Positions 35,775 through 59,813 are shown, counted from the stretch's first letter. The stretch is DNA of 64,000 bases from Blepharisma stoltei ATCC 30299 (GCA_965603825.1 CBFDEM010000045.1:1-64000); one strand, 5' to 3'. Translations and numbers: made by a program. The notes: generated by a model not told the origin, from the sequence alone.

Positions 35775-38700
35775 ATGTTAATAATCATCCTTTCCATTAT
35801 CGCTCTGTCGTCCTGCGCATATGGAGGAAGCATCGATCCAGATCTTTCAAATCCAATCCAACTTCTTTGAAACAATGCAGGCGACACTACAAGATACATT
35901 TTTAATTTCCAGCTTACAACTCAAATTCTTTCTGATGCCACATTGACAATTGATTTCCCTTCTCAATACGCAGCGAATTTAGGAATAACCAGCTGTTCAG
36001 CTTTCGAAATTTCCAACAGTTCTCCTACCACGCTCGCTTGTTCAGTTTCAAACCGAAGGGTTACTTTCCAATTCGGCAAAATTACAGCTGGCCAAAAATC
36101 AATAAAATTGCTTGGAGTTCAAAATCCAGCTACCTCCCAAGGCACAGGAGTGTTCGGGATCCGAACTTGAAAGAGTGCAACAATAATAGACGAGAACGCC
36201 CTGTACCCTCCTCTTGGAATTGCTACAGCTCCTAGTGCTCTTACAGTCTCATTAATCTACGAAGGAGCATTGTTAGCTAACTACTCTCCTTTATATAAAT
36301 TCGTAATCACTGTAACTTCAGCGTTCCCTGCTGGGTCCTGACTGAGGATTTTGCTGCCATCTACTTATACATTTGGGGAAAACCCAACTTGCTATGTGGA
36401 GAATTGGAAGACGTGAGTGAATTGTTCACAATTCGAAGATACCTCACATTTATATTTCTCGTCCTTAGAACAAGAACTGGAATCAGGAAAATATAATATT
36501 AGTGTCTATGAAATTTATAACCCTGCTGTCACAGGAAACCCTGGGACAATCACTTTAGAAATTTTACAAGAAAATACTTTTACTGTCTTATCAAGGAATT
36601 CAGCAATTGCAACTCCAACAATTCTGGCTGGGACAATAAGCAAAGTTACCATTTCAGCGACCCCCCTGATACAAAACTCTCCAGCCAACTATACTTTTAT
36701 TTTTCTGCCTTATAATACGATTCCTCAAGGAGGGTCTATACAGATTCAGTTTCCTTCCACTTATAATGGGATTATTTCAGGAACCTGCTTTGCAGTTTCT
36801 GGGCTAATGCCAGTCTCAGGATCTCAACTAGTTTCCTGTTCGTCTACCACATCGATAGTAACCTTTGCCGGCTTTCAAGCAGTTTCCCATCAATATTTGA
36901 CACTTTTTGTAGCAGCTAGCAATCCAAGCAGCTCGGGAAACACTCCACAATTCAGTATTTTTACATATGATAGCAATGGGATACTTATTGACCAAAACTT
37001 AAAAGCAGGTTATGTGACTATTTCGACAGTGCAATACCCTGAAGGTTTCGACATTGACATGTTTTATGCAAAATCTGATAACCCTATAGGAAGCTACGGC
37101 CCAATTGACATTTTTCTGCACCCCAGAAACTACGTCCCTTGCACAGTCCCACCTTCTACTTATTTAGACATTTCTATTGACCTGCCCGGCTCATTGATTT
37201 TGCAAAGTGGCTCGCTTTATTGCACATTTGGCTCAGATCAAGTGCCAGCCTCAAGCTGTGTTTATACATCAGGGTCACCAAATGTAATTACCATTAGAAC
37301 ACCAACCAGCACAGCTGTAGACTGCTGCCCTCTTTCAATTAAAATTACTACAGTCGGCGCAGTTCCTGGAGGCTTTATGATCCCTTCTAATTCCTATGGA
37401 AACCAAATTTTTACTGCCAAAGTTTACGATTCCTCAGGGACACAGCTTGAAGAAGCCCAATTTATCTTCCAAACCCGTCCATCCACTTTTTCGTCCTATA
37501 CTTTAGATTACCTTCACCATACAAGAGATGCGTGGAACGTCATAAGATTGACCTTTACAAATACTGTGGATATCCCTTCTAATGGTATGCTAGAATTTGA
37601 GTTCGTGACTGCAGGACATAGCTTCCCAAGAGACTTGGGCTGGGGACTGGAGTCTTTTGTAACCCATCAGTTTTCGTGCATTTATCAGTCTAATTGGCCG
37701 GATTCTCCATCAGGGAGTATGTATTGCGACTTAACGACTGGGACAACGGTGACTTCTGCTTTTGTAAGATTGCAAGGGTTTACTTCAACAGTAACTGCAG
37801 GAACAAGCCGTTGGGTTACTCTGTCTAATGTGAGAAATGCTTTATATGCAGGATTTGTGCCAACTGTGATAGTCCGGACAAAGGATTCAAACGGAATTGT
37901 GCTTCAAGAGCAGACTACTAATTTGCCGGCACTTGTAGAGTTGCCGACTGCTTCTACATCAGGGACTGTTACTACAAGTTCTACTACATTAGATGACTCC
38001 GACGTCGAAATGGACTTCAGTTTGCCTATGTCAGCAACAATTTCTAATAGTGGGGAAGTGTACTTTGTCTTCCCATATGGCTACAAGTGGAATTATCCGA
38101 ATCCTCAAGGAGGATCTATTGGGACTTGCTCTTCTTCTACCTTGTATGGTGGGACAAGCAGATATAAGAAATTTACTCAATGGCAAGCAGCTGGGATGCT
38201 ATATACCCAGGTGTCAGGAGACAGTGCTTCTTCTCCTTTTAACACTTGCTTTCTAGCTGACCATCAGTCTTTATGGATCCAGACACCTACGATTACAGCT
38301 TATGTAGTCGCTAACAAAGTGGTGCAGGATTATTATTTGATTTCTCATCCTTCTATTACCCATACAGCCTCTGCAAGCTTTACTGGAGCAATGGAACAGA
38401 CAGGACAATACGACAAAAACACCAAAAACTTGTGGGTGTTTACTTTTACTACAAGCCAACGCATAACTCCAGGCGGAAGCGTCCAGGCAACCCTCCCAAT
38501 TACTTATTTTTCAAGCATAAGCACCACTTGCTATAAAGTCGTAAATAGTGGAGTCACTTGTAAAGGGCAGCCAAATTGGTCTTCAAGTTACCATAGAATT
38601 TTGATTTCAAATGTAGCCTCCTCCAGCACTCTTTCTCCTTCAGTCACTTTTGAAATTTGGATCTATGCGACTACTAGTGGTACTACTGGGATTGCCGATG

Positions 38701-41700
38701 TAGATCTCTATTCTGAAGATGAGGACACAAATTCTAATAAGAAAATCGAAGACTTAGTCGTGTCGCTTACGATAGATGACTATGAACCACCTGCGTATAT
38801 AACGATGGATTCCTTAACTTCAAATCTTATAGAAGCTTATGGGTCAACTGCTTTGTATGATGAGTATGGCACAATTTTATTGATATTCCAGCCTAATAAT
38901 ATTTTCCCTGAAGCTACAACTTTGTATGATACTCTTGTTACTATCACATTTCCATATGATGGAACGACCCAGTTTTTCCCTAAAAACTCTGCAGGGCTGA
39001 TTCAGTGCAGAATGCAAAAATATCCACCGTTTATGCAGTATGGGTATTTTGGAAGGCTATGTGAATGGACAGCTGGGCCACCTGACGTAGTAACTTTTTA
39101 TGTCCCCAAAGAACTCCGAGTAGACCCTGCCTTAGGGCAATTTCAAATAGAACTCTCCACAATTGGTGTTGTCCCTCCTATAGAAAATGGCTTTTTATAT
39201 CCCCAGCCTTGGGGCTACTATAGATTCATAATAAACCTAGACAAAAATTCTGGCGCCAACATAGAGCAAGCTGAGCCACTTCTCTATTTATCAGGAAACC
39301 GTCCAACTGTACTATATACCACTTCAGAGCACAAAGGTGCAGGACTCTGGAACGTCATGATGTTTAACTTCAAAGCGACCACCTCAATTCCCCCTTCAAA
39401 TGACCCTACAACCCCTGGTTATATTTTTATAAAGTTCCCATTTGACTACTTTTCAACAGGGAAAGGGTGGAAATCAGATCTTGGGATGAATATGGCAGAC
39501 GGCTCAAAAATTTCTTGCTTACAAGACTCTACTCTCCATACAGCTCCAGCTATGGATTGCTATTTAATGTATGGTTATGCGACTTATGTAACCATAAAAG
39601 TTACTTTTACGTCAACTGTGAATGCTGGAGACTATATAAATTTGTACTTTGCATCAATAGAAAACCCGTCGGCAAATTTGTATGATTTTGCGATTGAAAT
39701 AAGCAGCCAATATGAAGATTTATCAGCGTATGAGGACCCACAGTGGGTGATGCTAGACAGAAAAGTCAATAGGTATGTGGAGACTTCATGGACGATTTCT
39801 CCTTCTACAGGACAAAATTTCCCCAGCTTTGACATATACTCAACTGTTGTCGATCCAGTACAGTTTGTCCCAGGAGACTCGCTGACAGTCGAATTCTCTA
39901 TATTCAATTCTCAAAACATTGCAAGCGGCGAATATATTTGGCTAAAAATTCCTGACGAGTTTACAGTCCCTACCACTTTAGCGACTCTGGAGATTATTAA
40001 AGGAAGCCAAGGAGGATCTACAGACTCTTCCTGCATACCTGCTACACCTTACTATGTGTGGCCAGAAAACAGATTCATTTCAATGAAAAATTGCCACGGC
40101 CCACTAACAGTGCGCACTTTTAATAGGCCGTCTCCAGCTGCGCAAGACACTCCTAATAGAATTAGAGTTTCCTTATTAACATTGCCAAATTGGCCAACAG
40201 CTGACGGAGAGTTCACAGTTTACCATTTAGTAGACAGAAAAGCGCAGCTAGCCCGCCTATCCACTTTTCCTTGAAGCTATATGATCCCAACAGGTACTTG
40301 CACAGTAAATTATATTGGAACTACTGTATATGGCGACTATGGGGCAACTGAAGACTATAATTTCCAATTTAGCTGTGATGACGCCATTCCTGTTGGAGGA
40401 GACATTGTGATCACTTTTCCTTCAGTTTTTAATACTAATTCAGCGTCCATAAGCGCCTCTGGATGCACTTTTGGAGGTGGCTCAGCAGTGACTACAGCTG
40501 GAGGGGCTAGCTGTACATTGGTAAGAGGAATAGAGCTACACATAAATGGGTTTACGACAGCTGTTTCTGCAAATTCACTTATTGATGTGACAGTTAGCGT
40601 CCAAAACCCTACTCAAGGGTCCTATTCGAGCCCTTACAAAGCTTACCAATATACGATTGCGACATATGATAGCACTACTACAACTCCAGGAAGTTTTAAT
40701 GTAATTGATTTAGTGACTTCTGCTGACTATGCGTGGCTGACTGTATCCTCTCCCAGGTCTATCAGACCTCCAGTGATCTCCACAGACACCAATCTAATTT
40801 TATACTACTTGCAAGATCCTCTTATTGACCCAGGCCTCGGCCCAATTACATTCACCATTACGACTCCTACCCAAATAACCCAAAAGACTGGCTACATGAC
40901 CATTTCTACCACAAAAACCATATCTTTGCTAAATAATGCCCAAATCCGCTGTGTCTGGATAACAGGAACTACAGAGCTTCTAGCAGACCAATGCACCTTT
41001 ACCTCTGGATCCCCAAACACAATAAAGATGTATGCTCCTACATATAATAATATTCCGGTTGCTACTAAATACACGATATACATCACTACAGTTTTTTCTG
41101 ATGGAGGCTTAGAAGGAATCAGCTTTGGTAGTGGGCTGGTCAAATACCCCTTCTTTGTAGATGTCCATGCAGCAGGTGGATCTTCTACATCTGGATCAAT
41201 GGGTTATTTAGAACAAGTCGCTGTCCCTTTCCCTTACTTGGACGTTATTTCTGACTGCTGGACACAAAACGAATACACTAGACTCCGAGTTATTTTCCAG
41301 GTTTCTTCTTCTACATCTATAGCTGCTAGCTCTTCTAGTACCAGAATTGTAATTGAACTACCTACTAATAGTGGACTTTTCCCAACTGACTTAGGCCTTG
41401 GAATTAGCGAGAACGGAAAAGTTCCATGTGAAAGTCAGCAAAGCACAAGCGGGACTTTGACCTGCTACTTCTTCCCTGGGACGACAACTCCGGCTACTCC
41501 TGACAAAATCGTAGTTTCTGGATATAGTAGTATGAGCTCGTCTACCAGCTATTATCAGCTTGACTTCCCTAAAATCTATAACCCATCCACTGGAGGCGAC
41601 GATAAAATAGTAGACGTCGTGGTTTATGCTTTAGATATAAGCTCTGGATGGCCAGGAACTTTCATATATTGGAGGACTATAAAAAATGTGTCAAGAATCA

Positions 41701-44700
41701 AGACAAATACTGTGAGCACACTGACTTCTACTAATCAGGTTACAGTGTCAGGAACTACAGCTGGGAGCACAGGCGACTATACTTTTCCTGTAGATGTGAC
41801 CTTGATAGCTAATGACTATTTTGTGATAGAATTGCCTAGCCTTGTGTCTATGAGTTCTTCGACCCCAACCTGCGAGTCCGACTCAGGAGCGGCCTTAACC
41901 TGCTATTATTACAAAGATACAAATACAGTCTTCGTAACGGCGACAGGAGCGCATACTTCAATTACGATTTACTCGATTAACAACCCTCCGTATGCACTTA
42001 TTACAGCTCAATATCTTCAATTTTATGCTGAGTGGTGGAGCGAGTTCGAGAAAAAGACGAGAATTACTTATCCTGTTCTAAACGAGTCTTTTGGAACTCC
42101 AGGAGGCACAATAACAGTCACTGTTCCAGATAAGCCAAGCAATAAGTACTATAAAAGTGATGTTACAGAGTACAGAATTGATATATCAGTAGGCTATCCT
42201 ATTCCTGTTGGAGGCTGCATTGCTTTTGATTTTCCTTCAGAGTATCCTAATCTTCCTGAGAGCACCTGCCAGCACTATCACCAAGGCACAATTTCGATGC
42301 TGACTGGGACTGTAACTTGTTCAGTTTCCAGCCTCAGAGTAGTCCTTACAGGGTTTAACGCAGTTTCGATCAGCACAGTAGTCTCCATAAAAGTGCTAGT
42401 GGAGCACCCATCAAGTGCTTTGACGACCTCAAGTGGGATTGTGTATAGCTCTTACAGCTCCAACTCTCCAATTGCTGCAAATCTCCTCGAATCTGTGACA
42501 TCCTCCACTTTTACTATTACAAACACCCTTGCGCCTTCTTATTACTCTTTTCCACGCCAAATGATGGAATCTGTAGTTATAGAGGCTGGCAAATATGGCC
42601 CTATAAGGATGTCTCTATCAGGCTTAGGCACAATTATAGCCAATACAGGTTTTTTAAAAATAACTCTGTCAAGTTCGTTCGGAAGTATAGCTACTGGCAG
42701 TCAACTTGTATGCTTATGGAATAGCAGAATGAGCAGATGCTCCGTTTCAGGGTCAGTTTTCACTGTGTATGCTCCTGAAAACGCTAACTGGTCAACTTAT
42801 CCATTTCTATTGACTCTTACCACCACAAATGCGGACTCTATTGACCAAGTAGGAATTCAGCACCCAAGCACAGCTGGTGAATATGGTATCCAAGTCAGCG
42901 CTGACTGTAACGGCGATGGTTCATTAATTAAAGAAGCAATTGACTATGTCCACGTCTTTCCCACCTCGCATTTGTCAACATTTTCGGTGAATCCTTCACA
43001 CTATACAGCAAGTGCTATCAATTTATTCAAAATAACTATAACTCCAACTAATAGTATCCCTCAAGGCGGCTATGTAAGAGTCTATTTTCCAACTGCAGAT
43101 TACTGGGGAAATACACTATTTGCGGATGATCTTGGAACTGGACTGTCAGATGGTGAGTATATTTCTTGTCAAGAATTTCCTTCTGATCCGAATTTAGTTC
43201 CAGTATCAGGCCAGACCATTAAATGCAAACTTTACCTTGGAAGTTCAAGCATTGCTAAGCCAGCATATGTAGAAATGACTAATTTCCAAGCTGTCAGTGG
43301 AGTTTTCACATTTGTAATTTTTGGTGTCGAGAATCCTCCAAACACATATGCAGATGCAATAAATGTTGGGTTCATAGCTCTGACTCTAGACGCAAGCTAT
43401 GCCGATTTAGACTACTTAGATCTAACCTGGGTGTATACAGTCCTTGATGCAATTTCTTCAGACCCTGGAACTCCTTCTTCACCTAATGATAAGCCTTATG
43501 CAACTTCAGGCCAAGATGTGCTTGGGAGCACTGTGGAGATAAATATTCCTATGATGGACAATGTGGTAGCTATATCATCAGGAACGACTTATCTTATTGG
43601 AGTGCCTTCTGTAATTCCTCTGACAGGTGTTAGTATATCAGACTGCTATGTGTACGAAACCATTGGAATTATTGAGTACTACTCTCCTCCATCTGGATCT
43701 GCAGGCAGCTACCCTCTGTTAACCTTTACAACAACAGTAAAAATAAATAAAAACTGGTCAAGCCCAGTCCTCAGCTGTATTCAAATACTAAACAAAGTAT
43801 GCCAGAGGGAAGACGATTATAATGGAATGGCCAGTTTAAATACACATGCCCTGACAATAGGAACTGTGACATTTTCTACAATAAAGAATCAAGATTTGAT
43901 AGGCACGCTTTCTATAACCACAGGAGTAATAATACCTGTTAATGGTCTTATTATGGTAACTTATCCTACTGACTATACTATTGAAGGCAGCGATTGCGAA
44001 ATTTCAGGACTTTCTACTATGACAAACTTCAAATGTACAGTCTCTGGACAGTCTGCAAGTATACAGGTCTATGAGTCTATTGCCAGCGGGACTACTTTGA
44101 CTATTAAGGCATACCTTTTATCATTGGCAGAAGATAGCAGCAGCATGACAATAAGCACTTATTATGATTCAGCCGGGACAAGTATGCTGGAGACTGGCAC
44201 GAGCACTCCTACAGCGATATCTTCTACTACGCCATGGCCTAACGCTTTCCAAGCCCCGCCCCAGTCAGTCACACTAACTTCTGCTTCAATTAACAAGTAC
44301 GCTCAGATCAGGTTTAAGCTAAAAACTAGCCTGACAATTTCCTATTCTAGCTCAAAATATATCCAAGTCACTTTGGCTACAGGATTCCAAGGCAAAAGCT
44401 CCAACGCCAATCTTTACTGTACTGTTGACAATAACCGAGTTCCATGTTCAGAAACCACCGCAAATAAAGTCTACCAAATTTTTGCGTCCAGCACATATAG
44501 TATTTCCTCCAATGTGTGGCACGAAATCATCATATACACAAATGGAGCTGACGGTGATGCCAATGGGCTTCAGCTGTCTTCAAGCTTTTTCACTGAGTCT
44601 ATAACTGTGATATCATATGACGGCTCCAGCTCTGAGACTGAAACAAGGCAGCTTTCAGTGCCTTCAGCAATTTTTCCCCAATTGACTATTACTTATTTGC

Positions 44701-47700
44701 ATACGACAGTTGACCAGTTTAATGTATTTTCGTTTTCTTTTGTGACGAGCGTCGCTGTTGATGGGCCAAATGGAGATACCTTTACTGTAGAGTTCCCAAT
44801 GGAAGATTATAACCAAAATACGCTATTTAGATATGACTTAGGGACTGGAAGGATTTCAGGGGACACTTTTTTCTGTGACAATTTGTCGTTGACTGCTTCT
44901 CCAAAGATTTATTGCTATTTTACTCAAGGAGACACGACTTATAACAAGCCAGCCAAAGTGACCATTTCAGGGTTCAGCTATGTTAATACAGGGACTACCG
45001 TCACATTTGACATCCCGAAAGTAAAAAATCCTCAAACTTCTGGAGTATCAGTAAATGTGTCTCTAAGAGTTGCATCAGTTAAGAGCACAGGTGTAATAAT
45101 GGAAGAAAGAACAGTCGATTATCTGTTATTAGTCACCTCAAACACAGTCTCTTCTTCATGCTCTCTTACTCAGCCTATCCTTGGATCTTATCTGACCTAT
45201 ACCACAACAACGACCACTATGCAATTTTACTGCTGTGCAGCCCAAGATCTACCTTCAGCCACAGGAAATTACTATATTCTAGAAATTCCATTAAAATACC
45301 CATTCCCCTCTTCTACATCTCTAAATGCAGGAGGCGATTTTACAACAATCGTAAAGAAATACGCATCAGTAGGCTGGATGCTTTTAAAGTCTACTTCAAC
45401 TGCTAATTGTAAGACAAACAGTATATCGTCTACTTTTGACCCAGTCAAGAACCCAACCTCCACTGTTTCTGCTAACACCTTAACATTTAAAGGCTACGCA
45501 ATTTATCAGAGCCAAATGACTGATTTAGTTACTTATGGGTCCATTTCTACAGCAATAACAGTGGCTTCTACAACTCCTTTGTCCTGCACAATGACATCTT
45601 CATCAATTTCAATGCAAGAGTACAATATAGACGCAGTCAACCTGATTGACGTAACTTTTACATGTACTGGGACTGATATCCCAGTAGGAGGCTATTTATA
45701 CCTTGAAGTGCTATCTGGAGGCAGCAGCGTGACCACTGACCCTTATTATTTTACGATCTACAAAGGCTTGGGAACTGTCTGACACTATACTTTAAGCGGG
45801 TCTAAGTACACAATTAAAGACTGGACATCAGCCATCACTTCAGGGACTCAAATGCGATTTTTAATCCCAGTCAAAAATCCCAGCTCAACAGGCGCTACAA
45901 TCACTATAACAGCTTCTGCATATGATAATAATAACAACCAAATGGGCTCATATACTGCCACAACCCCAGCCTTAACAAATGCAGGATACTCTTCTGTTTA
46001 TTCTTTACAAAGCCATTATTTGCAATTTAACAGTCTCAACTCATGACTGAGCACCGAAATGACGCTTTATTTAAATCTCCCTCACTCTCTCACAACAACA
46101 TATTCTTATGTAACGATCGATTTTACCGGCGGAATTCAGGCTCAGTCTACTAATAGAGATGATAGGTATGGATATTTTGATGGATCTCAATGCGAGCAAA
46201 GCTATAGCGGCTGAGGAGTTTACAACAATTATTATTGTTATGAAGCCAAATGGACAACGAGTACTAAGCTTCAATATACACTTGTTAATACATTCACCGT
46301 TTCATCTGGTGTCCACAAATTTAATTTTGCTGGCTCTTGGTGAACTTACTTGGAGCTTGAATCTTCCAACTCAGGGGTACACTTAATAAAGGTGACTGTT
46401 ACATCGTCTGTTACTGAATACTACACCTTTTTGTACAGAACACCCACGAGTAAAGAGAACACAAGCTCTGACTGGTATGGACTGATCGTGAATTATGAAA
46501 ATGCTCAACACGAGAGTAAAACCACAAGCAACTATGTGCACTATCTACTTATTGAGTATCCAGTTGCTTTTGGGTCACTGAATGGGTTTTCGAGTGACCT
46601 CGGTTTTGGGGTTACTGATGGTTATCAGATCCCTGGATTGGTTGTATACAGCTCACTGGCGCTAAGGGACTGCATACTAAGACAGTCTGTCTTCGACAAC
46701 AGGGCTGGAATTCTGTGCAGGTCTCCATCAACGAACAATAACCCAGATCTATATATTCTTTTAATTAAGAGTCCTGCTAGCGCGGTTACAGTCTTATATA
46801 GCATTATGGCTTTATATCAAGATGATACTTCAAGATATACTTGGCATTCAATGGCTGTGTCCAGTCAGGCTTTTCAAAGTGGCTCAGTGACTACAACTAC
46901 TGGAACGATTGCTATTACCAACCCAGCAGCCCAAAGCACAGCTACATGAGACTTCACAAATATGATTAACACAGGCAATCTTGGCTCTTCAGGCTATAAT
47001 ATGCTGATACAACTTACCAACTATCAGAGCGCCTACCAACTGGGCACATACTCAATAGTAAACTCAATCAATACTGCTTATTTTCTTTATTCTGGCTATA
47101 TCCTTGCACAAGTAAACGGTGCAGACACCCCCCAAATCCAATTCAGCAATCCTTTATTTTCTCGTTCTGATTTTGCAGTTAAGGCTTGGACATTTGGAAG
47201 CAGTAATACTCTAAATACAATAAAAACAACGAGCACACTGACAATTACCACTGGGACTTTGTCTTCAAAATCTATTATAGCAGGCTCGACCCTTATAGCT
47301 GGCTATACCTCCAGTTTGACTTTAAAATTCACCTATGCAGATATAGTCCCAGCTGGTGGACAAATCCAAATTGTTTTCCCTACGACATACTTTTCAGCGA
47401 TAGACTGTTCAATATGTACGTCAGACTACACAGACCAAGACGCAAGTAACCAGGTTACTTATACAGTTACCACAGGGTCAGATATTATTTTGACGATAAC
47501 TAAATTCCAGAAGATCACTGCCGGCACTTATAACATTTATGGTGTCCATGCAACCTTTTCCTCAGCAGGGATTGCAGGTATTGATATAAATACTTATTAT
47601 GACACGTCTACATCTTATCCTATTGATGAGGACACTGTATCCTTGACAATCAGCGCAGCTCCGACTGTTAATCCTGTGATATCTTTGTATCCTAGGCTGT

Positions 47701-50700
47701 CATTTATGACTGGGTTTATTAATCCGACAGCAGGGTCGTATTCAGACTTAGTTCTTTATTTTAACCCTACTGTAGATGTAGACCCATCTACCACTGGGAC
47801 TGTCAAGCTAACAATGCCGAGCTCTTCTCATTGGTTTAATACTGATGGAGTCAGCAGCCTTTACTGCCTTGTGAATGGAGACTTAACTACAATTACAACT
47901 ACCAGCACATATTATACAATAACACCTAACTCAGCCCTCAGTGCAGGAACCCTTTATACTATCATTATTTCTGCAAGAAATGGCAAATATGATGGATTAT
48001 CTACAGCTACTACGACTTCTTCAAATCTGATAACTCTAGAAGGATACACAGGCGCTACTCTTACCCAACAAGCTACTTACTATATAAAAGTGAGCCCTAT
48101 TTTCACTGAGTTATATATAAACCCATACGTAAAAGGGTCAGGCTCAGATACCCTTTATCAATTAAATATTAAAACAGCTACAACAGTGACTGGCTCAAAT
48201 AATGGAGCTTTTGTGGTGGAGTGGCCAGTCTACTCGCTGTCTTCTGCTATGGCAATTTTCTCAAGCACTGTGGGGAGTACTCAGGTTTCTGGGACGTATT
48301 TCCCTTGTGAACTGTTCTCGACAGGAAGCAGTAAATATATCCCTATGACTGGAATTACTTGTATGCTGATTAAAGGATATACGATTTCTTCACAAAGGAC
48401 TTCACCGACTAAAATTGTTGTACTGCTAGGGACCAATACAATAAGCTCAGGGACTTCAATAGTAATAGGGTTCCCAGGAGTGACTGTTCCAACAACTTCT
48501 AGAGGTCCAGATTTATATATATACAGCAGAGAGATTTCTAGTGGCTCTGAGGTGGTTAAGGATTATTTGAATTACAAATATGTCAGCTTTGCTCACTCTC
48601 TTAATAGCCCCACTTCAATTACTAAGAATTTCCAATCTAGCTTTAGCAACTCAGTTCTCATGTCAACAGCTGTCTCATTTTCTATCAGTTTGCAGCCCGT
48701 AGCCGCAATTTCTACCTCAGACTACCTAGTTTTCACCTATGACCCTACCATGATATCAGTCACCACAGGATCAGCAGCCTTGTCATCACCTTCCTATTCG
48801 GCACTTTTTTACTACACTACAGTCGGATGAATTGTAATTCAGCCTTCCTCTGCAATAGGAACTGGCTCAGCGACCACATTTACCTTTGCAGGGATGAATA
48901 ATCCAAGCTACATTTCTGGATCTTCAAAAGACTATATTTCTGCTAGACAATGGGACAGCTTTTCGAACAGTTTTACTCCAGGGACATGGGACTACACCTA
49001 TGAGTTTTCAGGGTCTACTCCAAGTCCTCTCTATACTTTAGGCACAGTGACTCCTAGCTCATTAGGGTCTTCATTTGGCTGCCTTACCTGTGCTAGCTCA
49101 GGGACAAGTGTTCTTTCCAGCCAATATATCATGTATAAGCTTACATTCCAATACAGCTTAAACCTCCCTTCAGGGGCTATATTTGAGCTTATTTTCCCTA
49201 AGTCTACAAATGAGTACCAAAGCATCGCTTATAATTGTGAAGCCTCATCCTCTGGATTTTCTACCCCAAATTCTGTTTACTGCTCTGCATACTCAACCCA
49301 AACTCTCAGGATTTATTCATTTGGGACTTACACAAAAAATACAAACGTTGTAGTCTATATCAAGGCCTTGAATCCGCCCATAGCTTTTTCGCCGACTTCT
49401 GGGTTTACTATAAATGTGTATTATGACTCTTCAGGGACTTATAACATAGGCACAGACAGCACTAATAAATTTACAGTGACAGGCTTAAGCTCAGTTCCAG
49501 TCGGGACAATGAAAATTTATATACCATTTTCAAGTGAGTATATATCAGCTAGAACGACGTCAAATGCACCGCTTATCTTTATATTCAAAACAAGTGCCAC
49601 AATAACAAAAAATTCAGGCACTGTGGCCGTAACAGTATCTTCAGGGACTTTTGCCCAAGCTTCAGGAGGCACATTGATATGTTATTTCATTGATCCGACC
49701 AATAGTAACCTGAAATACATTGCAAAATCCTGCACTTATTCATCTGATGTATATACCATTACAGCACCAATCTACACCAATATAGCGAGTGGCCAGAATT
49801 GGATAGTCAGCATATCAACGTATGGAGCTACAAGCAATGGCCTTACGTATCCATCGGCTGGAGCAACTTTTATCAATGTGGATTTAAATAGTGTGGAGAT
49901 GTTTGACTATAATTATTATGTGGTTCCTTCAGCATTGACGATCGCAAAAGTCATTTCTTATTGTAGGACGACGAGTTTTTCTAATGTTTTTCAAGTCTAT
50001 GTCAATGCTGGGACTATTGGTACATTCTCGTCTGGGATGAGAATTGAGGCTGAGTTTGATGTGGCTCAGTTTGCAAGTGATTTGGGGACAGGGATTAGTG
50101 ATGGAAATGCAATGGATTGTATGAGTGATATGGCAATGGAAACTTCTACTACACTGCAGTGCTCTTTGCATTATGGGAACTCTGGGTCTTATCCTTATCG
50201 CCCTCTGATGACTAAAGCAAGAGAACATAACCAAGACACTAATTCTGGCAAATATTATTTATCCTTAGCAAACGTGATAAATCCAAGCAGTAGTGGTCAA
50301 AATGTTGCTATAAGAGTCAAATACTTCGACATCTCAAGTGGCTCAGAAGTCTTCACTGGTGACGAAATGATATATTTTGTACTTGGCTCAGTCTCAAACT
50401 CCTACACAACTGACAACGAAAACTCTTACATCAACTCTATGAACACCAAAGCAGTTGCAGCTACAAGTGTGACCTTCAGCGCGGTTACAAATGTAGGATA
50501 CTACGCATTAATCTCTTCAAGCTACGTTTTCTGGAGATTCCCATACGGAATCAGCACTTCTACAACAGAGACTCAAAGTCCTTCAGGAAATTCCCAGACA
50601 ATTGATGGGATTTTAGGTACCTCTGTGGCTGGAGACGGTCTCCTAGTCTCATCTCCTCCTTCTTCAGCTTCCTATACAGGTACTATTACATGGAATTTCG

Positions 50701-53700
50701 CTAACTTTGTGAATCCTCCCTATATCCCGGCTTCCTACCCAATCCTGACAGCAGATATAGTAGTCCAAGGCTTTTATGTAGTCAAAGTTGTTTTTGATCA
50801 AAACCTAGCAAACCATGTAGCAGCTACAGTAACTGTAAGCCACATTTGGGCTGGGGATGCTACAAATTATGGCTATTTAGGAGGAAGGATTGATATGGAC
50901 ATTTTGTTTACTATGTCAAGCTCACTTTCAAGCAGTTTTACAATAGAAATCACCTTTCCGTCTACCTGGACTACAGACGACCACTGCACATTTTTAGGGA
51001 CTTTGCAGTCTCCAATGAATAAAGACTGGATCGAGTGCAACCAGGTCAGCACCAATGGATTTCTTATAACAAATATAAACGCTTATACCAAAAATGATAA
51101 TGTAAATATCAATGGCTGGGTAACTTTGCCAAACGCAGTAGGACCTCATACAGTGACTGTAACTTTTTACTATACTTATCCTACACAGATTATTGCGACT
51201 GGCACTGGGACTTATACATTGAACAATGTGGCTTATCATAGTCAATTTTCAATGGGAAGATTTATATATAACGCTGCTGATATTTTTGTGCCTGCAAATG
51301 GAGTTTCACCATTTTATCTGTCTGTTCCTGTGCCTTCCACATTGACGATGAACGCTGGGTATGTAAATATTGATTATCCTGCATCAAGTTGGACGACTAC
51401 GCTGCCTTTAGTATGTGTTTGGGAAGGAACTAGCATATGGCAAGCAAGCACATGCAGCATTTCTGGGAATACTGTAACTATTGTAGCACCTGAATATAAT
51501 GATATTACTGCAGGCACCTGGAAAATCACTGTCAATACTTTCCAAGGGATCGACTACAACGGCATCACTTTTCCTCCTACAACTGAGGTGTGGACTTTAT
51601 CTACAAGCTATTCTGATGACGGCATAGCAGGCCCTAACACTATTTCTAGCACGATTTATATAAAAGTTCCACTAGAGCAGTTTGCAACTGATTATGTGTT
51701 CACATTTAGTAATATCAAAAATACCCACATTTTATTAGAAGTGGATTTTTCCTGCACTAATTCATATACTAAAGGTGTCCCTCAGCCTACTGGAAGATCC
51801 TATCTTATAGTAAGATACCCAACCAAGGTCAACGGAAATACTATTTTGCAAGACGATTTCGGAAGAGGCTTTAGTGATAAAAAGCAAATCCCTTGTTTCC
51901 CTCTGACCTCTTTTACAGCTGAAGACTGCTATCTAATATGGGGAAGTGGTAGCTCCTCAGTAGATGGAAAACTCTATATAAATAACTACACCCCTGCGTT
52001 ATCTACAAGCTCACAGTCCTTTTATATCCCATGGCTAGTCAATCCAGCTACCCAAGACAGAATATTGCAATTAACAATAGAACTCTGGGAATTAAATTCA
52101 GCATTAAAATATGAGCTAATGGAATATAAAGAAATCAAATACATTTACGCTGTCCTAAGCACTACGATTTCTACCACAAATCCAGGAACTTTAACTTACC
52201 ATAACACAAATATAAATCAGCAAGGAGACATAGACTTTACTTTTGTGTTGCCTAATAGTCTGACAGGGACAGCTGATGAAGCTGTGGTATGGACACTGAC
52301 TGAGACAATGCCTACTTGGAGCTCTAGTATGTGCCCCAGCTCTCAGACGTGTGAAGACATTCTGTCAGAACATTTAATATTTATGAGACATCCGTCAGGG
52401 TCTGGGACTATTAATAATGGCGACATTATTACTCTGCAAAATGTAATGAATCCAGAAGACCCTTATATGACTCAAACCTGGACAATTTGGATCTATAAAG
52501 GCTATACCATCCAAAAGAAAATCATTTATAACGCCAATATTCCATTTACCTATCCTACCCCGAGCGATTTTAACTACGTTACGTGAAGGTTTGCAGACTA
52601 TAACGTTCCGAATCCTCTGACAAGCCGATATGACCAATATACATTGAGGTTTAGGATTTCCCATACGATATACTCTGGGTATACAATTGAATTTGTGTTC
52701 CCTACCAGTCCTGCCTCTTCTGGAACTAGCTTTGTGGTTGACCATGACTGCGACTGAATCCATGGACTCTCAGGCAGTGGCTTAAGATGTGCAGCAATAA
52801 GCTCCTCAACTATTCAGTGCACTGGGTTTAATACGTATTTTCCTGATTACCCAGCTATTGTGATGACCTGTATGGCTACCAATCCTCCAGTATCTGGCAC
52901 TTCTAATGATTTTGAGCTGTACGTTTATGATGCCTCATCGACCCTCGTGTACTCAGACGTCGCAATACAAACCTTTGTGATAACTTCAGCCCCAACTTTA
53001 TTAAACAAGTATAGTGTAGGCGGCCCTTGGAGAACTAGAGAGCCTGCTTGTGAGAATACTAACTATGCAGATATTACCATATATTTCACAGGCCAGAGGA
53101 CTGATATTACTTATCAATTTAAGGACAGATTCAGCTTTTATTTGCCGACTGGTGTAAGTCTGGCTACTCTCCCGTCACCTGACGGTGCTATTGAGTGTAC
53201 ATTTAATGACATGGCCAACCAGACACCTGGCGAGTATTGTACACTTACTGGGAGTAGAATTGATGTAGGGATTACTGACCAGCAAGGACTTGTGGCAGGA
53301 ACTAATTATGTGATTCATGTATATACAAGAGATGCGACAGCAGGGCTAGGGTATAATGGATTTGTGCTGCCGACTTTTCCTGAGTGGGAAAGCTGATATG
53401 TCCAGGCTTCAACTGGTAGCAGTGGTGAGTCTTCCAAAGTGGTGGTTGAAGACTGTCCTGTTCCTTTTACTTCTTTATCTCTAACACCTTATTCTTATAC
53501 AGTTCAAAAGTGAAATATTTATGACCTGACTTTTCAGCCCAGCAGAAATGTCCCTGTTGGTGGAGGAATTGCAATAGAATTCACCACCTATAACGAAATT
53601 GATCAAGTTTTCGACTTAGATTTAGGCCTTAATATGGCCCCACTAGTTCCTAGTCAAGATTTCAGCTGTATAGTAGAAAGTGGGTTTGGCAGCCCATCTC

Positions 53701-56700
53701 CAGGGACTATTAAATGCACAGTTTACAAGTCAAGCACAGTTTCCTATACAACTCCAGTACTCGTCACAATAACGGGGCATACCACAGCAATTTCTTCAAG
53801 CTCTTCTCATTCAATCAGGCTTGCAAAGCTCTGGAATCCAATCCAGTCAACGTCTCCCATCCTCAATGAATCTCTCAGGGTCCATTTCAAGATTTATTCC
53901 TTTAATATAAACACAAACTCGTTTACAACTGACAGGGCTAAGTACAATTTGCAGACTCTTTTAAGTGTTTATGACCCATGGGGTTCATCTAAATTGACAA
54001 ATCCTTCTCCGACTATTATAGATCCAGAGCCTCAGCCAACTACTACAGTAACAAATACGTATTCAGTGTTCACAAGCTCATTACAAACACAAATTGACTT
54101 AGGTGTTACCTTAGACACGTCTACAGGCTTCGTGATTTATGAGTTTGATAATGCCTTTATTCTCCCCACGACGGGATCTACTAGTGTCAAATGTAACGGG
54201 TCTACGTCTTTATGTGAAGTCTATAAAGAAGCTCAATGAATTGCGTGGAGGACGAATCAGTCCCCAAGTTCTTCGTTTTCTATTAGTTTTCTGGATGCTG
54301 GCACGAATACTTTTAAGACGCCTAATTATTATGCGACAAGCTATACTTTGTCAGCTTATATAATAGAAGCTGGACATTGGGAAGAGGAGCATTACTTTAC
54401 CAATATGGACTCTTTTGCAGCTGGGACTTTAGGTGTTTCTTTTTCGCATAGACTTTCGAGCTACCATCGGCTTACTTATGATGTTTGGACTATTACAATT
54501 ACGCCATCATTAGGCTCTACTATTGTTAAAAGGATTGATATCTATTTCCCAAGCGAGTTCAGCTGGATTGACGCTACATGCAAAACTACTGGATTGACTC
54601 AGATTTCGACAAACTCAAACCCTATCAGCTGCATTTCTGACTGCTCACAAGAGACCTGCACAAATCATATAACCATTACTAATTATGATCCACTATCAGC
54701 TGTCAATACTATTTCGGTTATTATTGGTGCAATGAATCCTAAGAACGCGGTTACAACCTCCAATTTTAACATTTACTATTACGCCTCAACTACTGATACA
54801 ACCCAAATCATAGAAAAATACTCAGGAAACTCTTTGACAATTGACAGTATCATCTACCCATACGATTTCTGGGTTGAGTTGCCTACTTTGAGTATTTATG
54901 ACAGAGGAATCCAACAAGGAGCTTATGGAGAAATATGGATAAGAACCAGAAGCAGAGTGACGCTCCCTGCTAATACTGGGTGGTATAAGGTTGTATTGCC
55001 TAACAACTTTGACATTGCTGCAGCAGCTACTCCAAAATGCACTATTGTACATACTGATGTACCATTCCAGAACTGGCCTGACAGATCCTCTGACTATTAT
55101 AACCACATTGTGGTGCCAAATTGTATTTATAGCAATGGCGTGCTCAACATTATGTTCCCTGGGACCATTTTACGTCAATTTTATGGGGTTAAACCTGGGA
55201 TTTGCACATACCTAGTCCTTACAACTTACCCATCTCCTGTCTCAGGACAGTCTGGCTTCCGTGCTCCTTTACTTTCAGGATGCTCTCAGTTCCAATTTTA
55301 CGCTATGGACGGTGCAACAGTCCTTGAAGAATCCATTACAAATCTCTGTATTAATGGAAACACTCCTACAAACCTGCAGATTTACCCAAGCACTATTGAC
55401 ACTGACACAAATTCCATTTACATGTTCTCCTTCACCACAAGTTCCTATGTCCCCAACTCTTATTTCTACTATTCTGGCACATACCCAGGCCCTCAGTCTG
55501 CTATACAAATTTCTTTTGAAAGCTACGAAAGTTTCCAATTTGACTTAGCTGGGCAGTATGACTCTTATATGCAGGTATTCTGCCAACAAATAACAGGGAT
55601 TTCTCCACCTTCTGGTGAATATTTATCCTGCAAGCTTACTTTGGGCTCAACGACGTCTTCTCCTACATTTACGCATTATCCAGCAATAATTACTATTACA
55701 AACTTTAATAGTATTCCTCTAGGCACCCAAGTATCATTCCATTTGCCTGTTATAAGAAATCCAAACACAGACGGTTGGGTCCCACAGATTACGGTAGGAA
55801 TATACCAAGTGGATTATTTAGGCTTGAAGTCTTGGATAGAAGCCGAACAAACAATAGACCTTACAGCAGTGACAGCATCAACAGCCTTATCTGTTGTAAG
55901 TGTATGCACAGCTCCTACAACGGATTGTTGGGTTACTAATAAAGCAGTCAAGTCAAAAACTACGCTTAACTTGTATTTCAAAGCACAATCAATTACTCTG
56001 AATGGAGGGTCTATGATTGTGATACAGTTCCCTAGCCAGTATGAAGATATTCCTATTAGTGGAGTTAGTGCATATATACAGAGAAACCCTGTGAGCAGTA
56101 CCACAACTGATACTTTTATAATACAAGGGCTCACAGTGGTGACTTATCCACTAGCCAAAATGGTAGCTTTGACAACTCCTTCAGGAAGCGCTATCTATGT
56201 AAATCAGGACTGCACGATTTCTCTATTGAACTTTATAAACCCATCATATATAGACTCTTGCTCTAACTGCAAGATAAACTATTACTCCATTTCTCCAGCA
56301 CAAAAAATAGTAGACCAATACCAAACAGATGACATTTATAATATTTTTGGATTCACAACGGTCGCTTTTTCATTAAGTCCTATCTCTTTATCCTCAGTCT
56401 TTGCAAACTCAGCGGATGTGACTCAGACCTACACATTTTCCCCTCTTTCCACTTTGCCATCAGGTTCACAGACCAAGATTGTGATGCCAACAACTTTTCC
56501 AGACGTTTCAGCTTTAACCCCAGTGCCAACTTGTTCTCTTAATATAACTGCGACTTGTGCGGTTTCCTCATATTCAGTTATAATAACAGGATACTCAGAC
56601 ATTTCTGCAGGCACTAAAGTCCAGCTTAAGCTTTCTGGAACCTTAAACCCTACTTCAGCTTTATTAACGACACAGTCTCCAAGTGGCTTTTATATACAGT

Positions 56701-59700
56701 CCCAAAATTCTAATGGTAAGCAAATAGCCTATTCTGAGTTCCCAGTTCTTCGTATCAATGGTCCAAATCCTGTCACTAGAATCCAAGTAAAAATAATCAC
56801 GACCTTCCCTAACTCTAAAGCCTTATCAGCTTATACATTTAGCATAAACTCAATGCAAGGAATTCCTAAAGGCTCTGATATCGTCATAACTTTCCCTTCA
56901 GAATACTCTTCTCTTCCTACAAATGAGCGCTGCTTTGTGTCAGGGAAATTGATATCATATACATCCTGCTCAATAAGTGGGCTGACAATGACAATTTCTA
57001 CGAATGAGGATATAGCAAGATATGAGAGTTTAAATATAACGATTCCTGGAGTACTGAACCCTACAATAACGACCGCAGACAGCAATGGAGGGCAATATAC
57101 CTCAGCTTTTACAGTCAATACTTACTTTGCGGGACAGCTTATTGATGAAATCGACCCAAGTGACAGTGATGCAAAGGTTTATATTAAAGCAGCCCCAGGA
57201 AGCTTGATAATTACTCAGACTGAGCTTATGCCTCAGTCTGAAGGGGAGATGGCTTTATATTCCTTCTGGGTAACCAATCCTGTCTATATTTCCAATAATG
57301 ATGACATTTCGATGATTTTCCAGTTTCCTATAGAATACAGCTACCAATTGACGTCTTCTTATATTGACTTATTCTGCTATAGTTCTCCTGACTACGAATC
57401 TTGTAACTTAAATTTCCCTCGTATGATAGAATTCCGCACCCTTTCTCCTTATACAGTCCAGCTGGCCATGCTTTTCAAGATTTTCGCTATCACAAATCCA
57501 GTCCAGGGCACTACAAATCCAATAGGTATTTATCTATACAACAATAAAGAAAAAACTTTAATTGGCTACAATAATACTATAACTTTTGTAACAAAGGCAA
57601 TTCCTTCTATTCTCAGTATGTATTCAGTAGAGTCCTCATCATTGATTACCCATACTTATGCAAACTATAAGTTTAACTTTACTATTACTGATAAAGGCAT
57701 CGACGACGATGGAGGAATTTATGTGGATTGGCCTGGAAATTACTATAAGCTGTTTTATGAGCCGAATTATACTTGTAGCTATATATACCCAACTGACCAA
57801 ATTTTGACGTCCCCGACTTGTCTATTTTTGCTACCCACTGGGTATCGTAGAACTGCAGTTTCTATAGCTACCCCAATTCCTACCAATTATGGAGATATGA
57901 GTGTTGAGTTTAATAATGTCCCTACATTACAGCAGGAAGGCTTATCAGGCAGCTTTATTATGAGGATTTTTGATGATGACATATATGCAGTTACGGCGAG
58001 ATCTTATCCAAACCTTACCCCTTACTCTAATTTATATTTCCAAAATATAGGCTACAGGATTTTTGTGAATACTACAGTCGTTTATGTCTATAAAGGAAGC
58101 TACTCCTACCCTATAAAGCTTACCTTAGAAAAGCCTTGCCAAACAGGACTACAAGTTATCCCGAATATTGTGGAAGGAACTGTTGGTGTCGACCCGAAAA
58201 TACTGTATTTCCAATATGAGTACACAAAAACGCTGACTTTTAGGGTTTATGCCCCTATGACTGCAAATACTACGACCTATACCTTGCACTTCGAGAAAAA
58301 TGAGACGTCAACTGACCCAGCGCTAAGAGAATATAAGCCTATGATAGATATCCCTGTCATAGTTTTAGAGCCTATTAACAATATAGGGGTCTATACAGAA
58401 GATATTTCTCATATCCCTCTTTCAGGTACAAGCTTGCCTGTAAGAATGTGGCTGGATAAGCCAGCATATGATGAGCTAAACGTAACTTTATCGACATCTA
58501 CTCCAGAGCAGCCAGATTATGTATTTTTCAACCCAAGCGTCATTACCTTCAAAAATGGAAAACAAGCTGACTATTTTACAGTGACTTTGGTAGAAGGTGC
58601 TATAAGTGGCTATATAAAGTTTACCTTATCTGGAAATGCTTCTGCCAGCTATAAGCTGATTAGGCAGTCTATCACTTTCCAAACTCTTCCTTTAGATGTC
58701 TCTAGCCCTGTCATAAAATCAGCTAGATTATATTCTATTGCAAGGACTTCAGCTTCTGTTTATATCCAGTCTTCTAAGGTTGGCCTAGTCCATTATATCT
58801 ATACAGCTGCAGGGACATCTCCTCCTATTATGCAAATGCTTGTAAATGGTGATACTATGTGGTGTGATGCTTTACAGGTATATGGAAAGGTTTGGACAGA
58901 CACAGATAAAGGAGTAGCGATAATCCCAATGACAGGCCTTACTGATAACACTGCTTATACGTTGTATTACACTGTGCAGTCGAGGTCAAATCATACCACA
59001 GTCAATGTAGAAACTTATAATTTTAAGACCTTGCCTACACATTTGCCTGCGAAATTCAGGATTTATGTAACTGCGCTGTCATCAGTAGAAGAAGTCAACG
59101 TTGGGGTTGCGAAAGCTTTAGCATTCCCATTGGCAAATGTCCTGGCGACAGGAATTGATCCAGCATTAGGCATTACGAGAAGAATGCTGCTGCAAAACAA
59201 GCAGCTGTACTATGAGTTTACGCTGTTTGTAAACAGAGACTCTTCAATGGATAAGCCAATTACGTATGTCAATAATCTTGATAATAATATAGACAGACTT
59301 ACAAAGTACGTCCCCAGTTTCAATACTTCTTCAACTGTTTCTGCGCACTCAAGTGAGTATTCTTATCTTAATGCTCAGTTTACTAATGAAATTACTGTGG
59401 TTTCAGACGCTAATGGCACACTTAATGCATCTACAATACTAAATGTGGCAGGAACTGTTTATGGAGTTTTATTGGGATCAGATAAAAAAGCGCCAAGTAG
59501 TGTCCAGATACGAAATGGGCTGGATGCTCATAATGTAAAGGTAAAAGAAGGAAGATATTCTTATATGAATGTTGAGTATGGCCAAACGGCTTATTTGAAC
59601 TTTACCGGGCTTATAAATCATGCTGAAATGGTTTTGTATTTAACAGCTGAAAATGCATTGCCTGGAAATCCCGATTTGATGGAAGATGAATTTACGATAG

Positions 59701-59813
59701 CTAAATCGGTTGTAGTTGGGAGTGCATTGGACACGACTTATGTTTATATCTTCAAATATCTGAATTCAGCCGCTTTTATATCAATTTCAATGATATTAGT
59801 CTTAATAATCTAA
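35775..59813 (+). CDS. Giant (8012 aa) secreted S/T-rich beta-sandwich repeat surface protein, probably GPI-anchored
   Basis: All long plus-strand track ORFs from 35943 to 59813 are in the same frame. I read each gap and found 16 TGA and no TAA/TAG. Signal peptide MLIIILSIIALSSCAYG; recurring 'IPxGGxIxIxFP..Y', 'C...C' and 'xNP' modules; the protein ends in a hydrophobic stretch with no cytoplasmic tail (NSAAFISISMILVLII*). Confidence 0.9.

Follow-up and report, generated by a model that had tools for sequence, protein, structure and literature searches.

A single 24-kb open reading frame of Blepharisma stoltei encodes a predicted giant surface protein of eleven Ig-like cassettes

Giant surface rods made of tandem Ig-like domains are familiar from both bacteria and animals. 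The bacterial giant repeat adhesins (Bap, SiiE, LapA/MpIBP, antigen I/II, and PrgB) line up dozens of such domains in a stalk, which holds a terminal region out from the cell surface. Among the ciliates, the immobilisation antigens of Paramecium and Tetrahymena are large secreted proteins whose ends are conserved and whose centre is repeated. They have a GPI-type C-terminus and are encoded by multigene families with a bias toward chromosome ends. To our knowledge, very little molecular work has addressed the heterotrich cell surface. The gene described here lies in a window of 64,000 nucleotides from B. stoltei ATCC 30299 (the whole stretch of DNA that was analyzed), in which CCCTAACA telomere repeats occupy positions 1-1765.

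An open-frame scan of the window reveals one frame on the plus strand (35763-59813) that runs without TAA or TAG across 24,048 nt, or 8,016 codons; none of the remaining frames is open for more than 3.5 kb. The first ATG is found at 35775 and the TAA stop at 59811-59813, which yields a coding sequence (35775-59813, plus strand) of 8,012 codons plus stop. It harbors 16 in-frame TGA codons (35868, 36168, 36339, 36414, 40272, 45780, 46044, 46212, 46341, 46947, 48828, 52584, 52755, 53394, 53511, and 54237) beside 84 TGG codons. In B. stoltei ATCC 30299, UGA encodes Trp and introns are 15-16 nt long (PMC9942806). The preliminary description of the locus had called the ORF hidden, which applies under the standard code only; in the organism’s own code it is an ordinary ORF. 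The standard or bacterial code splits the region into 17 pieces, as fits several genes or a decaying pseudogene with TGA as a stop and the long frame as a readthrough artefact. This reading is extremely improbable and was rejected, as it is contradicted by the open frame of 8,016 codons, by the exchange of TGA with TGG, by the presence of only one signal peptide and one tail, and by the published assignment of UGA to Trp (PMC9942806).

The exchange of the two codons is seen both between species and within the population. The orthologue is covered by two contigs, L010 and L011, with a mutual overlap of 671 aa (99%), and it is 58.6% identical to the giant protein and colinear over residues 19-8016. 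The same frame is open in both contigs through their own TGAs. TGA faces TGG at 28 aligned sites (in either direction) and TGA at three. Of 24 natural variants in the giant frame, 18 are synonymous, among them a TGA>TGG change at 45782, and the synonymous excess continues on both sides of the TGA codons. In the cassette alignment, the TGA codons sit in Trp-enriched columns, and the adjoining P-type ATPase gene likewise reads through one TGA. Another frame of ~24 kb stays open in a paralogue of the same genome (G000:C21:392597-416428), which encodes 7,934 aa and is colinear over its full length at 25-33% identity. Within the 8,012 aa of the giant protein, hydrophobic 19-residue windows occur only twice, once at each end, and homology to the head and to the tail is found once each, which argues for one protein rather than several. 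Introns were not detected, neither as joints in the contigs aligned to 45000-50999 nor as 5-aa insertions relative to the orthologue. Four sequencing runs, presumed to be RNA, contain the stretch in the form of contigs. As had been proposed, the giant gene is a single gene with UGA as Trp; it is intact and apparently intronless, and purifying selection acts on its single frame.

The protein of 8,012 residues has a calculated mass of 874.4 kDa (0.85-0.9 MDa had been predicted). Its self-BLASTP offsets cluster at multiples of ~580-600 aa, and a cassette HMM detects exactly 11 full units between residues 566 and 7130 of the open frame, which bears out the ~600-aa periodicity that had been claimed. 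The HMM scores its own building units at E 1e-126 to 1e-174 and independently recovers units of the paralogue at E 1e-28 to 1e-42. According to the HMM and a module scan, the eleven cassettes of ~590 aa span 37458-57152 (plus strand) and start at 37458, 39282, 41199, 42945, 44649, 46398, 48078, 49908, 51648, 53442, and 55344. Each cassette takes on the order M1-M2-M3-M4 (44 modules altogether), with every module being a ~140-aa β-sandwich. M1 is related to M3 and M3 to M4 (hhalign probabilities of 97% and 83%, respectively). The four β-rich modules of the preliminary description are present in each unit, but the paired cysteines assigned to them are conserved in only three of the four: three Cys pairs per cassette, or six conserved Cys columns in 588 positions. 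Similarly, the F-x-x-D-L-G-x-G motif listed at 11 sites is strict at six (37623, 41379, 43119, 44826, 46587, and 50070) and degenerate at the other five, and it sits mid-module, off the unit boundaries. The cassettes are old and diverged, with a mutual identity of 18-26%. Within the gene, blastn returned no non-self HSPs at E<=1e-3, and the repeats are indeed too diverged to be seen at the DNA level.

As had been suggested, a single unit was modeled with AlphaFold and compared by Foldseek. The AF2 model of cassette 3 is all-β (pLDDT 77) and resembles tandem Ig-like arrays; these matches are generic tandem β-sandwich arrays with low TM-scores and carry no functional information. With pTM values of 0.50 and 0.63, the inter-domain geometry of the AF2 models is unreliable. 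The 48 repeat modules and ~7 tail domains that were counted add up to ~55 Ig-like domains in one chain, near the ~50 first estimated.

The array is flanked by a head and a tail, and a hydrophobic segment lies at each end of the protein. The signal-peptide-like N-terminal segment (MLIIILSIIALSSCAYG, 35775-35825, plus strand) coincides with a hydrophobic 19-residue window, and the paralogue and members of a family of ~2,000-aa proteins begin with a similar signal-like segment. Both this segment and the GPI signal were assessed by eye and by hydropathy. The head (35829-37457, plus strand) consists of four β-sandwich modules in the order M3-M3-M3-M4 (module HMM scan). It is 70% identical to that of the orthologue, and the ~2,000-aa family members have a homologous region in their first ~560 aa.

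The tail of ~880 aa combines Ig-like domains, two FN3 domains, and a small α/β domain in its AF2 model (pLDDT 86), all on the plus strand. Its first part (57153-58022) adds two more repeat-type modules: jackhmmer aligns the first ~285 tail residues with head modules, and model residues 16-150 match the Ig-type sandwiches YcnI and YweA (VIA Z 10.2 and 9.7, respectively). The second part (58035-58682) comprises two Ig-like β-sandwich domains, of which model residues 300-406 resemble the Ig-like domains of pilus chaperones (Z about 10, rmsd 2.3). FN3-like domain a (58695-59042) matches Dscam FNIII1 (VIA Z 11.7, rmsd 2.1 Å over 92 residues of the predicted model), and many further FN3 chains at Z 10-11; profile hits to FN3 chains are weak. 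For FN3-like domain b (59385-59723), two-domain FN3 chains align over model residues 517-857, and a partial profile match to Dscam FN3 (E 4.8e-7) is the best FN3 match among the profile-to-PDB hits. In the predicted model, these two tail domains alone show the FN3 fold. Pfam fn3 had no match on the tail piece, and its sole match was a repeat module outside the tail (15.4 bits, under the cutoff of 25). In the five pieces that cover most of the giant protein, Pfam gave nothing above cutoff.

Between the two FN3-like domains lies the small α/β domain (59049-59357), which is predicted by AF2 as strand-helix-strand-strand-helix-strand and carries an RR[L/M] motif in one of its loops. No other part is as well conserved relative to the orthologue (74.5%), and the domain is without a match in Pfam, PDB, and ESM Atlas. 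The motif occurs in 22 of 36 family members, and in ~17 it lies in the loop at the position that aligns. The GPI-signal-like C-terminus (59760-59810, plus strand, by hydropathy) has the small residues L-N-S-A-A followed by a run that stays hydrophobic to the last residue, with a short stretch of ~15 residues beyond the candidate omega site. About 33 of 36 family tails share a hydrophobic end preceded by small residues, and the orthologue terminates in ...YLNSGTSLVISLFSILLI.

N-x-S/T sequons are depleted threefold in the giant protein (34 observed versus 104 +/- 9 expected) and in the paralogue (33 versus 110 expected). The reversed motif is not depleted, nor are sequons in 24 other ORFs (113 versus 98.5), and the depletion is milder in the ~2,000-aa relatives. 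The Ser/Thr content of the giant protein is 24.5%. From the signal peptide, the GPI-type C-terminus, and the sequon depletion, we infer that the protein is secreted, anchored, and located on the cell surface, to which it is probably attached through its tail. The conserved Cys pairs also speak for the secretory route. The best Foldseek E-values of the tail model belong to ciliary central-pair proteins (7som_D and 9ijj chains), which could point to an intracellular axonemal or cortical giant of ASH/Ig-like domains, similar to hydin. However, the TM-scores of 0.1-0.14 mark this similarity as that of a generic β-sandwich array, and the signal peptide, the conserved Cys pairs, the sequon depletion, the hydrophobic C-terminal anchor, and the lack of Pfam matches to hydin or ASH families in the five pieces make a hydin-like protein most improbable.

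Secretion without a membrane tether is less easily dismissed, albeit rather unlikely. The protein would then belong to a cyst wall, to the content of extrusomes or pigment granules, or to mucus or another matrix, and its hydrophobic end would be cut away or serve in sorting alone. The signal peptide, sequon depletion, Cys pairs, Ser/Thr content, and tandem β-sandwiches would fit this equally well. Foldseek also matches the Chlamydomonas mastigoneme filament, and the ectodomain could be released by processing at the RR[L/M] motif, which lies in the membrane-proximal α/β domain. Only around half of the members carry the motif where it aligns, however, and a hydrophobic end after small residues in ~33 of 36 is hard to explain without a role in anchoring or GPI transfer.

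With moderate confidence, we favor an extended surface rod tethered by GPI or a helix, in which the cassette array is the length-setting stalk. Following cleavage of the signal peptide, the 8,012-residue protein would enter the secretory route, and its Ig-type modules would be stapled by disulfides within the cassettes. A GPI anchor or the terminal helix would attach the tail to the exterior of the plasma membrane or the ciliary membrane. At ~4 nm for each of the ~55 domains, the chain would form a rod on the order of 200 nm that keeps the conserved head distant from the membrane, with the cassette array setting its length. The extended shape is an extrapolation; a chain that folds back on itself, or one that is packed into a wall or matrix, is also conceivable. 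The most likely role would be that of a ~200-nm surface tether or coat fibre. In favor of the stalk, the ~2,000-aa relatives carry the head and tail of the giant protein with one cassette, the count of 11 cassettes is kept in both orthologue and paralogue, and the ends (~70% identity to the orthologue) are more conserved than the middle cassettes 5-6 (41-46%).

The paralogue shares the head, the 11 cassettes, the tail, the signal peptide, the hydrophobic end, and the threefold sequon depletion. It differs by its 37 in-frame TGA codons (16 in the giant gene), by a mid-contig position instead of one near a telomere, and by middle cassettes that are too diverged for the cassette HMM. Its public record (CAG9318836.1 / A0AAU9JDM9, “unnamed protein product”) spans only the last 4,985 residues; as this gene model is truncated, such genes are probably under-annotated in genomes with UGA as Trp.

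The ~2,000-aa family, which is represented by B. stoltei CAG9324854.1 (2,001 aa) and by many metagenomic and SRA-derived proteins, has a homologous head of ~560 aa, cassette, and ~880-aa tail, as well as the signal-like start and GPI-like end. The difference is a single cassette instead of eleven, which gives these members a predicted reach of about a quarter of that of the giant protein. The cassette profile retrieves 751 proteins at E<=1e-3, of which 58 reach E<=1e-30; all 751 are unnamed. Full-length matches to the head were obtained by jackhmmer in at least 40 family proteins (E down to 1e-147), and the tail profile matches the B. stoltei genome (41.46 Mb, 64 contigs) at no fewer than 28 places, with the tail of the giant gene at E 1.7e-216. 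The giant protein displays all three family features, namely the four-module head, the cassette with three Cys pairs, and the hydrophobic-ended tail of ~880 aa. The giant gene is the expanded form of this head, one-cassette, and tail family. No description of the family was found in the literature, and it has neither a Pfam model nor a named member.

In 19 of 28 cases, the distance from a family tail to a contig end is at most 100 kb (7.8 +/- 2.4 expected), and the giant gene is 34-58 kb from the telomere. Together with the multigene family of at least 28 full tails and its GPI-type ends, this would suit a variable surface-coat system, in which ~28 genes are expressed in a mutually exclusive or condition-dependent manner and the giant protein is a very long serotype-like coat. 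In Paramecium, mutual exclusion is restricted to subtelomeric surface-antigen genes (PMC4235209). Nevertheless, such a system appears improbable here. Tandem clusters inflate the count, which is 14 of 23 by locus, and “subtelomeric” is ill-defined in Blepharisma because its somatic genome has many alternative telomere-addition sites (PMC9942806). Moreover, no relation to the Paramecium antigens was detected in sequence (five pieces covering most of the protein, Pfam) or in Cys periodicity, and the one-to-one conservation of orthologue and paralogue favors a fixed function over rapid diversification. A more speculative and likewise doubtful proposal is that the head-cassette-tail genes are the selectively expressed heterotrich counterpart of variable surface antigens, comprising ~28 GPI-anchored, chromosome-end-enriched genes built on a ciliate-specific Ig-type module. 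The two ~8,000-aa members might then form an outer layer of conserved length, ~200 nm out, or might tether cells to one another, as in the adhesion of mating pairs.

The giant gene offers a clean natural experiment on what determines and maintains the length of a surface protein, with eleven cassettes one-to-one between species (59%) and paralogues (28%) and sister genes that carry one cassette. The sequon depletion and the contig-end bias provide concrete hypotheses on the heterotrich cell surface, and the family appears to be undescribed despite its 751 public relatives and a copy number of at least 28 in this genome.

Among eukaryotic Ig/FN3 surface fibres, the Chlamydomonas mastigoneme protein Mst1 is extracellular, cilium-associated, and built of tandem β-sandwich domains. 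The Foldseek matches to 9b4h and 8wa2 (TM 0.1-0.2) are at the level of the fold only, and neither polyproline nor EGF-like parts were seen in the giant protein. The top Foldseek matches of the cassette model are the bacterial giant repeat adhesins, again by fold and without sequence homology; of the BIg/Big_x, Cadherin-like, and RTX Pfam domains, only Big_8 was hit in the five pieces, below threshold (E 0.31, 11.7 bits versus a cutoff of 22.9). The secretion route would be eukaryotic and the anchor C-terminal and of the lipid type. Furthermore, adhesin repeats are near-identical, whereas those of the giant protein are old (18-26% identity). The immobilisation antigens share with the giant protein the overall layout outlined at the outset, in which the putative GPI signal of the giant protein is the conserved pattern of small residues before a terminal hydrophobic stretch, but a high Cys content with a regular 8-residue periodicity is the defining feature of these antigens (PMC4235209). 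The five pieces covering most of the giant protein had no match to surface-antigen Pfam families at E<=1. In agreement with the distinction drawn in the preliminary description, its Cys content is 1.5% (123/8,012), with three pairs per 590 aa and no 8-residue periodicity, and it is ~3 times longer and composed of ~140-aa Ig-type sandwiches.

A frame free of TAA and TAG runs for 24,048 nt on the forward strand (35763-59813, +), with its first ATG at 35775 and a TAA stop at 59811. The giant gene comprises 8,012 codons, including 16 in-frame TGA and 84 TGG codons, and agrees with the preliminary description of a single giant frame in which TGA encodes tryptophan. TAA and TAG are expected at ~4-5% of random codons given the composition of the window, so a frame that is open by chance can be dismissed.

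The window is the terminal part of the macronuclear contig C45 (583 kb); its first ~1.76 kb (1-1765) are CCCTAACA telomere repeats, interspersed with occasional variants. In the published description of the Blepharisma stoltei ATCC 30299 somatic genome, telomeres consist of CCCTAACA, UGA is reassigned to tryptophan, and introns are tiny, at 15-16 nt (PMC9942806). When only TAA and TAG are taken as stops, long frames appear on both strands of the window, and frames bounded by TGA are short; the window itself thus identifies TGA as a sense codon. The gene for a P-type cation ATPase (31611-35042, -) harbors a single in-frame TGA at 32940-32942. Its Pfam domains are E1-E2_ATPase, Cation_ATPase_N/C, and Hydrolase, of which the N- and C-terminal ones flank the TGA. 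The ATPase gene and the giant gene are divergent and separated by a spacer of ~730 bp. Adjoining the telomere, a small gene (2284-3033, +) encodes a TFIIF beta-subunit HTH domain (E 1e-19). Five tandem frames of equal size, ~3.45 kb (~1,150 aa) each, occupy 9346-30468 (-), and a sixth lies past the giant gene (60756-63836, -). Both pieces of this set that were scanned (23493-24986 and 61533-62054) match Pfam ANF_receptor, the Venus-flytrap ligand-binding region; by these matches, the set looks like a tandem receptor array.

The alternative that the frame combines several genes ending at internal TGA codons is contradicted by six independent lines of evidence, all of which concur on one gene. 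The first comes from natural variants in public contigs, assembled from four runs of one study (RNA by guess only), which cover 45000-50999 without gaps or joints. Eighteen of the 24 variants are synonymous third-position changes in the giant frame and fall on both sides of TGA codons; a TGA>TGG exchange at 45782 is among them. Secondly, an orthologue from a related organism is represented by two SRA-derived contigs (L010 and L011; mutual overlap 671 aa at 99%) that stay open through their own TGA codons over 11.3 and 14.6 kb. It is colinear with residues 19-8016 at 58.6% identity. Across both alignments, TGA stands opposite TGG 28 times, opposite TGA three times, and opposite another residue 12 times, five of which are aromatic. 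Thirdly, a paralogue on contig 21 of the same genome (392597-416428, -) encodes 7,934 aa with 37 TGA codons and is colinear over its full length at 25-33% identity. The TGA codons also fall into Trp-enriched columns of the cassette alignment (Trp 5% vs 1% at random positions). Only the first and the last 19-residue windows of the 8,012 residues are strongly hydrophobic, and the head and tail homologies occur once each, at opposite ends of the protein.

No sign of introns was found in the giant gene by candidate search, contig joints, or orthologue alignment. Only five tiny-intron candidates of the form GTA-N9/10-TAG are present; at 49538, the sole candidate within 45000-50999, the public contigs show no joint, and alignment with the orthologue revealed no extra 5-aa segment in the giant protein. 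Database queries were made with TGA-free pieces, and TGA was translated to Trp in local scripts.

The giant protein is built from a repeating cassette. In a self-BLASTP of 300-aa tiles, the offsets cluster at multiples of ~580-600 aa and reach 5,300 aa, and a unit-derived profile detects exactly eleven full cassettes in open-frame residues 566-7130. Both results bear out the proposed ~600-aa periodicity with eleven units. The F-x-x-D-L-G-x-G motif, through which these units had been recognized, is strict at only six of the eleven proposed positions and degenerate at the other five, and it is located within a module rather than at a cassette boundary. The DNA shows no self-similarity at all, as had been anticipated, and protein identity from cassette to cassette is 15-26%. 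Module profiles resolve a signal-like start MLIIILSIIALSSCAYG, a four-module head (M3-M3-M3-M4), eleven M1-M2-M3-M4 cassettes, and a tail of ~880 aa. Head and cassettes together contain 48 modules of ~140 aa each. Profile comparison with hhalign shows clear homology between M1 and M3 (probability 97%) and probable homology between M3 and M4 (83%); M2 has diverged most. Three cysteine pairs, with partners 13-16 residues apart, are conserved per cassette. The calculated mass of 874 kDa (pI 4.8) falls inside the predicted 0.85-0.9 MDa.

Conservation varies along the protein. Cassettes 5-6 (44649-48077, +) evolve fastest, with 41-46% identity to the orthologue vs 58-70% elsewhere and ~70% at the protein ends. 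Of the gene's 16 TGA codons, cassette 5 alone has four and the two cassettes together have five. Their counterparts in the paralogue are barely detected by the HMM.

The fold assignments, Ig-type as well as FN3, all come from predicted models. An AlphaFold2 model of cassette 3, based on a 32-row cassette alignment, is all-beta with a mean pLDDT of 77. Foldseek relates it to tandem Ig-like arrays, namely PrgB, antigen I/II C123, integrin alpha legs, Bap, and a Chlamydomonas mastigoneme, with good E-values and low TM-scores; the latter are expected of flexibly strung domains. The tail model (pLDDT 86, 36 homologues) is composed of two modules, two Ig-like sandwiches, an FN3 domain, an alpha/beta domain of ~100 aa, a further FN3 domain, and a terminal helix. 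Comparison of structures by a method independent of Foldseek confirms FN3 in the tail model (Z 11.7, rmsd 2.1 Å over 92 residues) and places the predicted repeat module near the Ig-type sandwiches YcnI and YweA (Z ~10). In Pfam, five TGA-free pieces gave sub-threshold noise only (DUF2808, Big_8, DUF5991, fn3). The ESM Atlas feature search with the tail returned no usable match, and the shape search returned one ciliate "hypothetical" cluster that matches a single module (TM 0.66).

Relative to the orthologue, conservation peaks at 74.5% in the alpha/beta domain of the tail model (59049-59357, +), which would lie next to the membrane. The domain has no Pfam or PDB sequence match, and its ESM Atlas scores are all <0.85. 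Given the order of its predicted secondary-structure elements, a SEA-like or Notch-HD-like domain was considered but is not claimed. An RR[L/M] motif is found in a variable loop of this domain in 22 of the 36 family members, at the aligned position in ~17. The loop could be a dibasic processing site; if so, the protein might instead be a released matrix or wall component.

The conserved cysteine pairs, the signal-like start, and the sequon content all point to the secretory route. The giant protein contains 34 N-x-S/T sequons, where shuffled sequences predict 104 ± 9, and is thus depleted threefold; the paralogue has 33 vs 110 expected. The reversed motif is not depleted, nor are sequons in 24 other ORFs of the same genome (113 vs 98.5). 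Other giants of the family are strongly depleted as well, the ~2,000-aa members less so. Selection against sequons would make sense only if the protein encounters the glycosylation machinery of the ER. The N-terminal segment is, by its pattern, a candidate signal peptide. In the C-terminus, ...YLNSAAFISISMILVLII, small residues give way to a hydrophobic stretch up to the last residue, a classical layout for a candidate GPI signal. Similar GPI-like endings are present in the orthologue and in ~33 of the 36 aligned family tails.

Cassette copy number is kept between species and between paralogues. Judged by architecture, the protein is most simply read as a rod tethered to the membrane: the cassette array lies between a conserved head and a conserved tail, and as a spacer it would determine how far the head extends. 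At ~4 nm for each of ~55 domains, a fully extended rod would extrapolate to the order of 200 nm. An axonemal protein, by comparison, is contradicted by the data presented here.

In a library of 1.84 billion proteins, the cassette profile matches 751 at E<=1e-3, of which 58 reach E<=1e-30. No representative of the giant protein itself was recovered, and the top match is the public model of the paralogue, which is limited to the last 4,985 residues of that protein. The 30 clusters checked are without functional names: all but one are labeled "unnamed" or "hypothetical", and the exception, "histone deacetylase 6" on a metagenome entry, is unsupported by anything observed. Many matches are ~2,000 aa long and combine a signal-like start, head, one cassette, tail, and GPI-like end (e.g., B. 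stoltei CAG9324854.1). Metagenomes contain further giants, such as a 6,875-aa protein that has both head and tail, and Tetrahymena utriculariae contributes a weaker relative. With eleven cassettes vs one in these relatives, the giant gene is a hyper-expanded form within a sizeable ciliate family. Word-index searches with the public paralogue model and a 2,013-aa relative matched almost only the queries themselves and therefore carry no information on taxonomy.

Two groups of matches bear non-ciliate labels. Cluster P0020 (MDD4985375.1, MDD5501063.1, and others) contains relatives of up to 4,341 aa annotated as "partial hypothetical proteins" of Dehalococcoidales/Omnitrophota MAGs. Their contigs are short, hold little else, and are probably eukaryotic (ciliate-like) and misbinned. 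Protein P0015 (EukProt, 6,738 aa), labeled as the cryptophyte Hanusia phi, matches the cassette profile at E 5.7e-59, has no BLAST similarity to the giant protein, and is enriched in sequons (105 vs 57). It may reflect a module range beyond ciliates or a contaminated sample.

With the tail profile, at least 28 full copies are detected across the B. stoltei genome, 19 of 28 within 100 kb of a contig end vs 7.8 ± 2.4 expected (14 of 23 as independent loci). Small tandem clusters of family genes are located on contigs C50, C7, and C6. The chromosome-end bias would fit a selectively expressed coat family, analogous to the surface antigens of Paramecium, a reading that is worth testing beside the membrane-tethered rod. 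Another set of heterotrich giants, the giant spasmin-binding proteins of Spirostomum, belongs to intracellular contractile fibres (PMC9946354).
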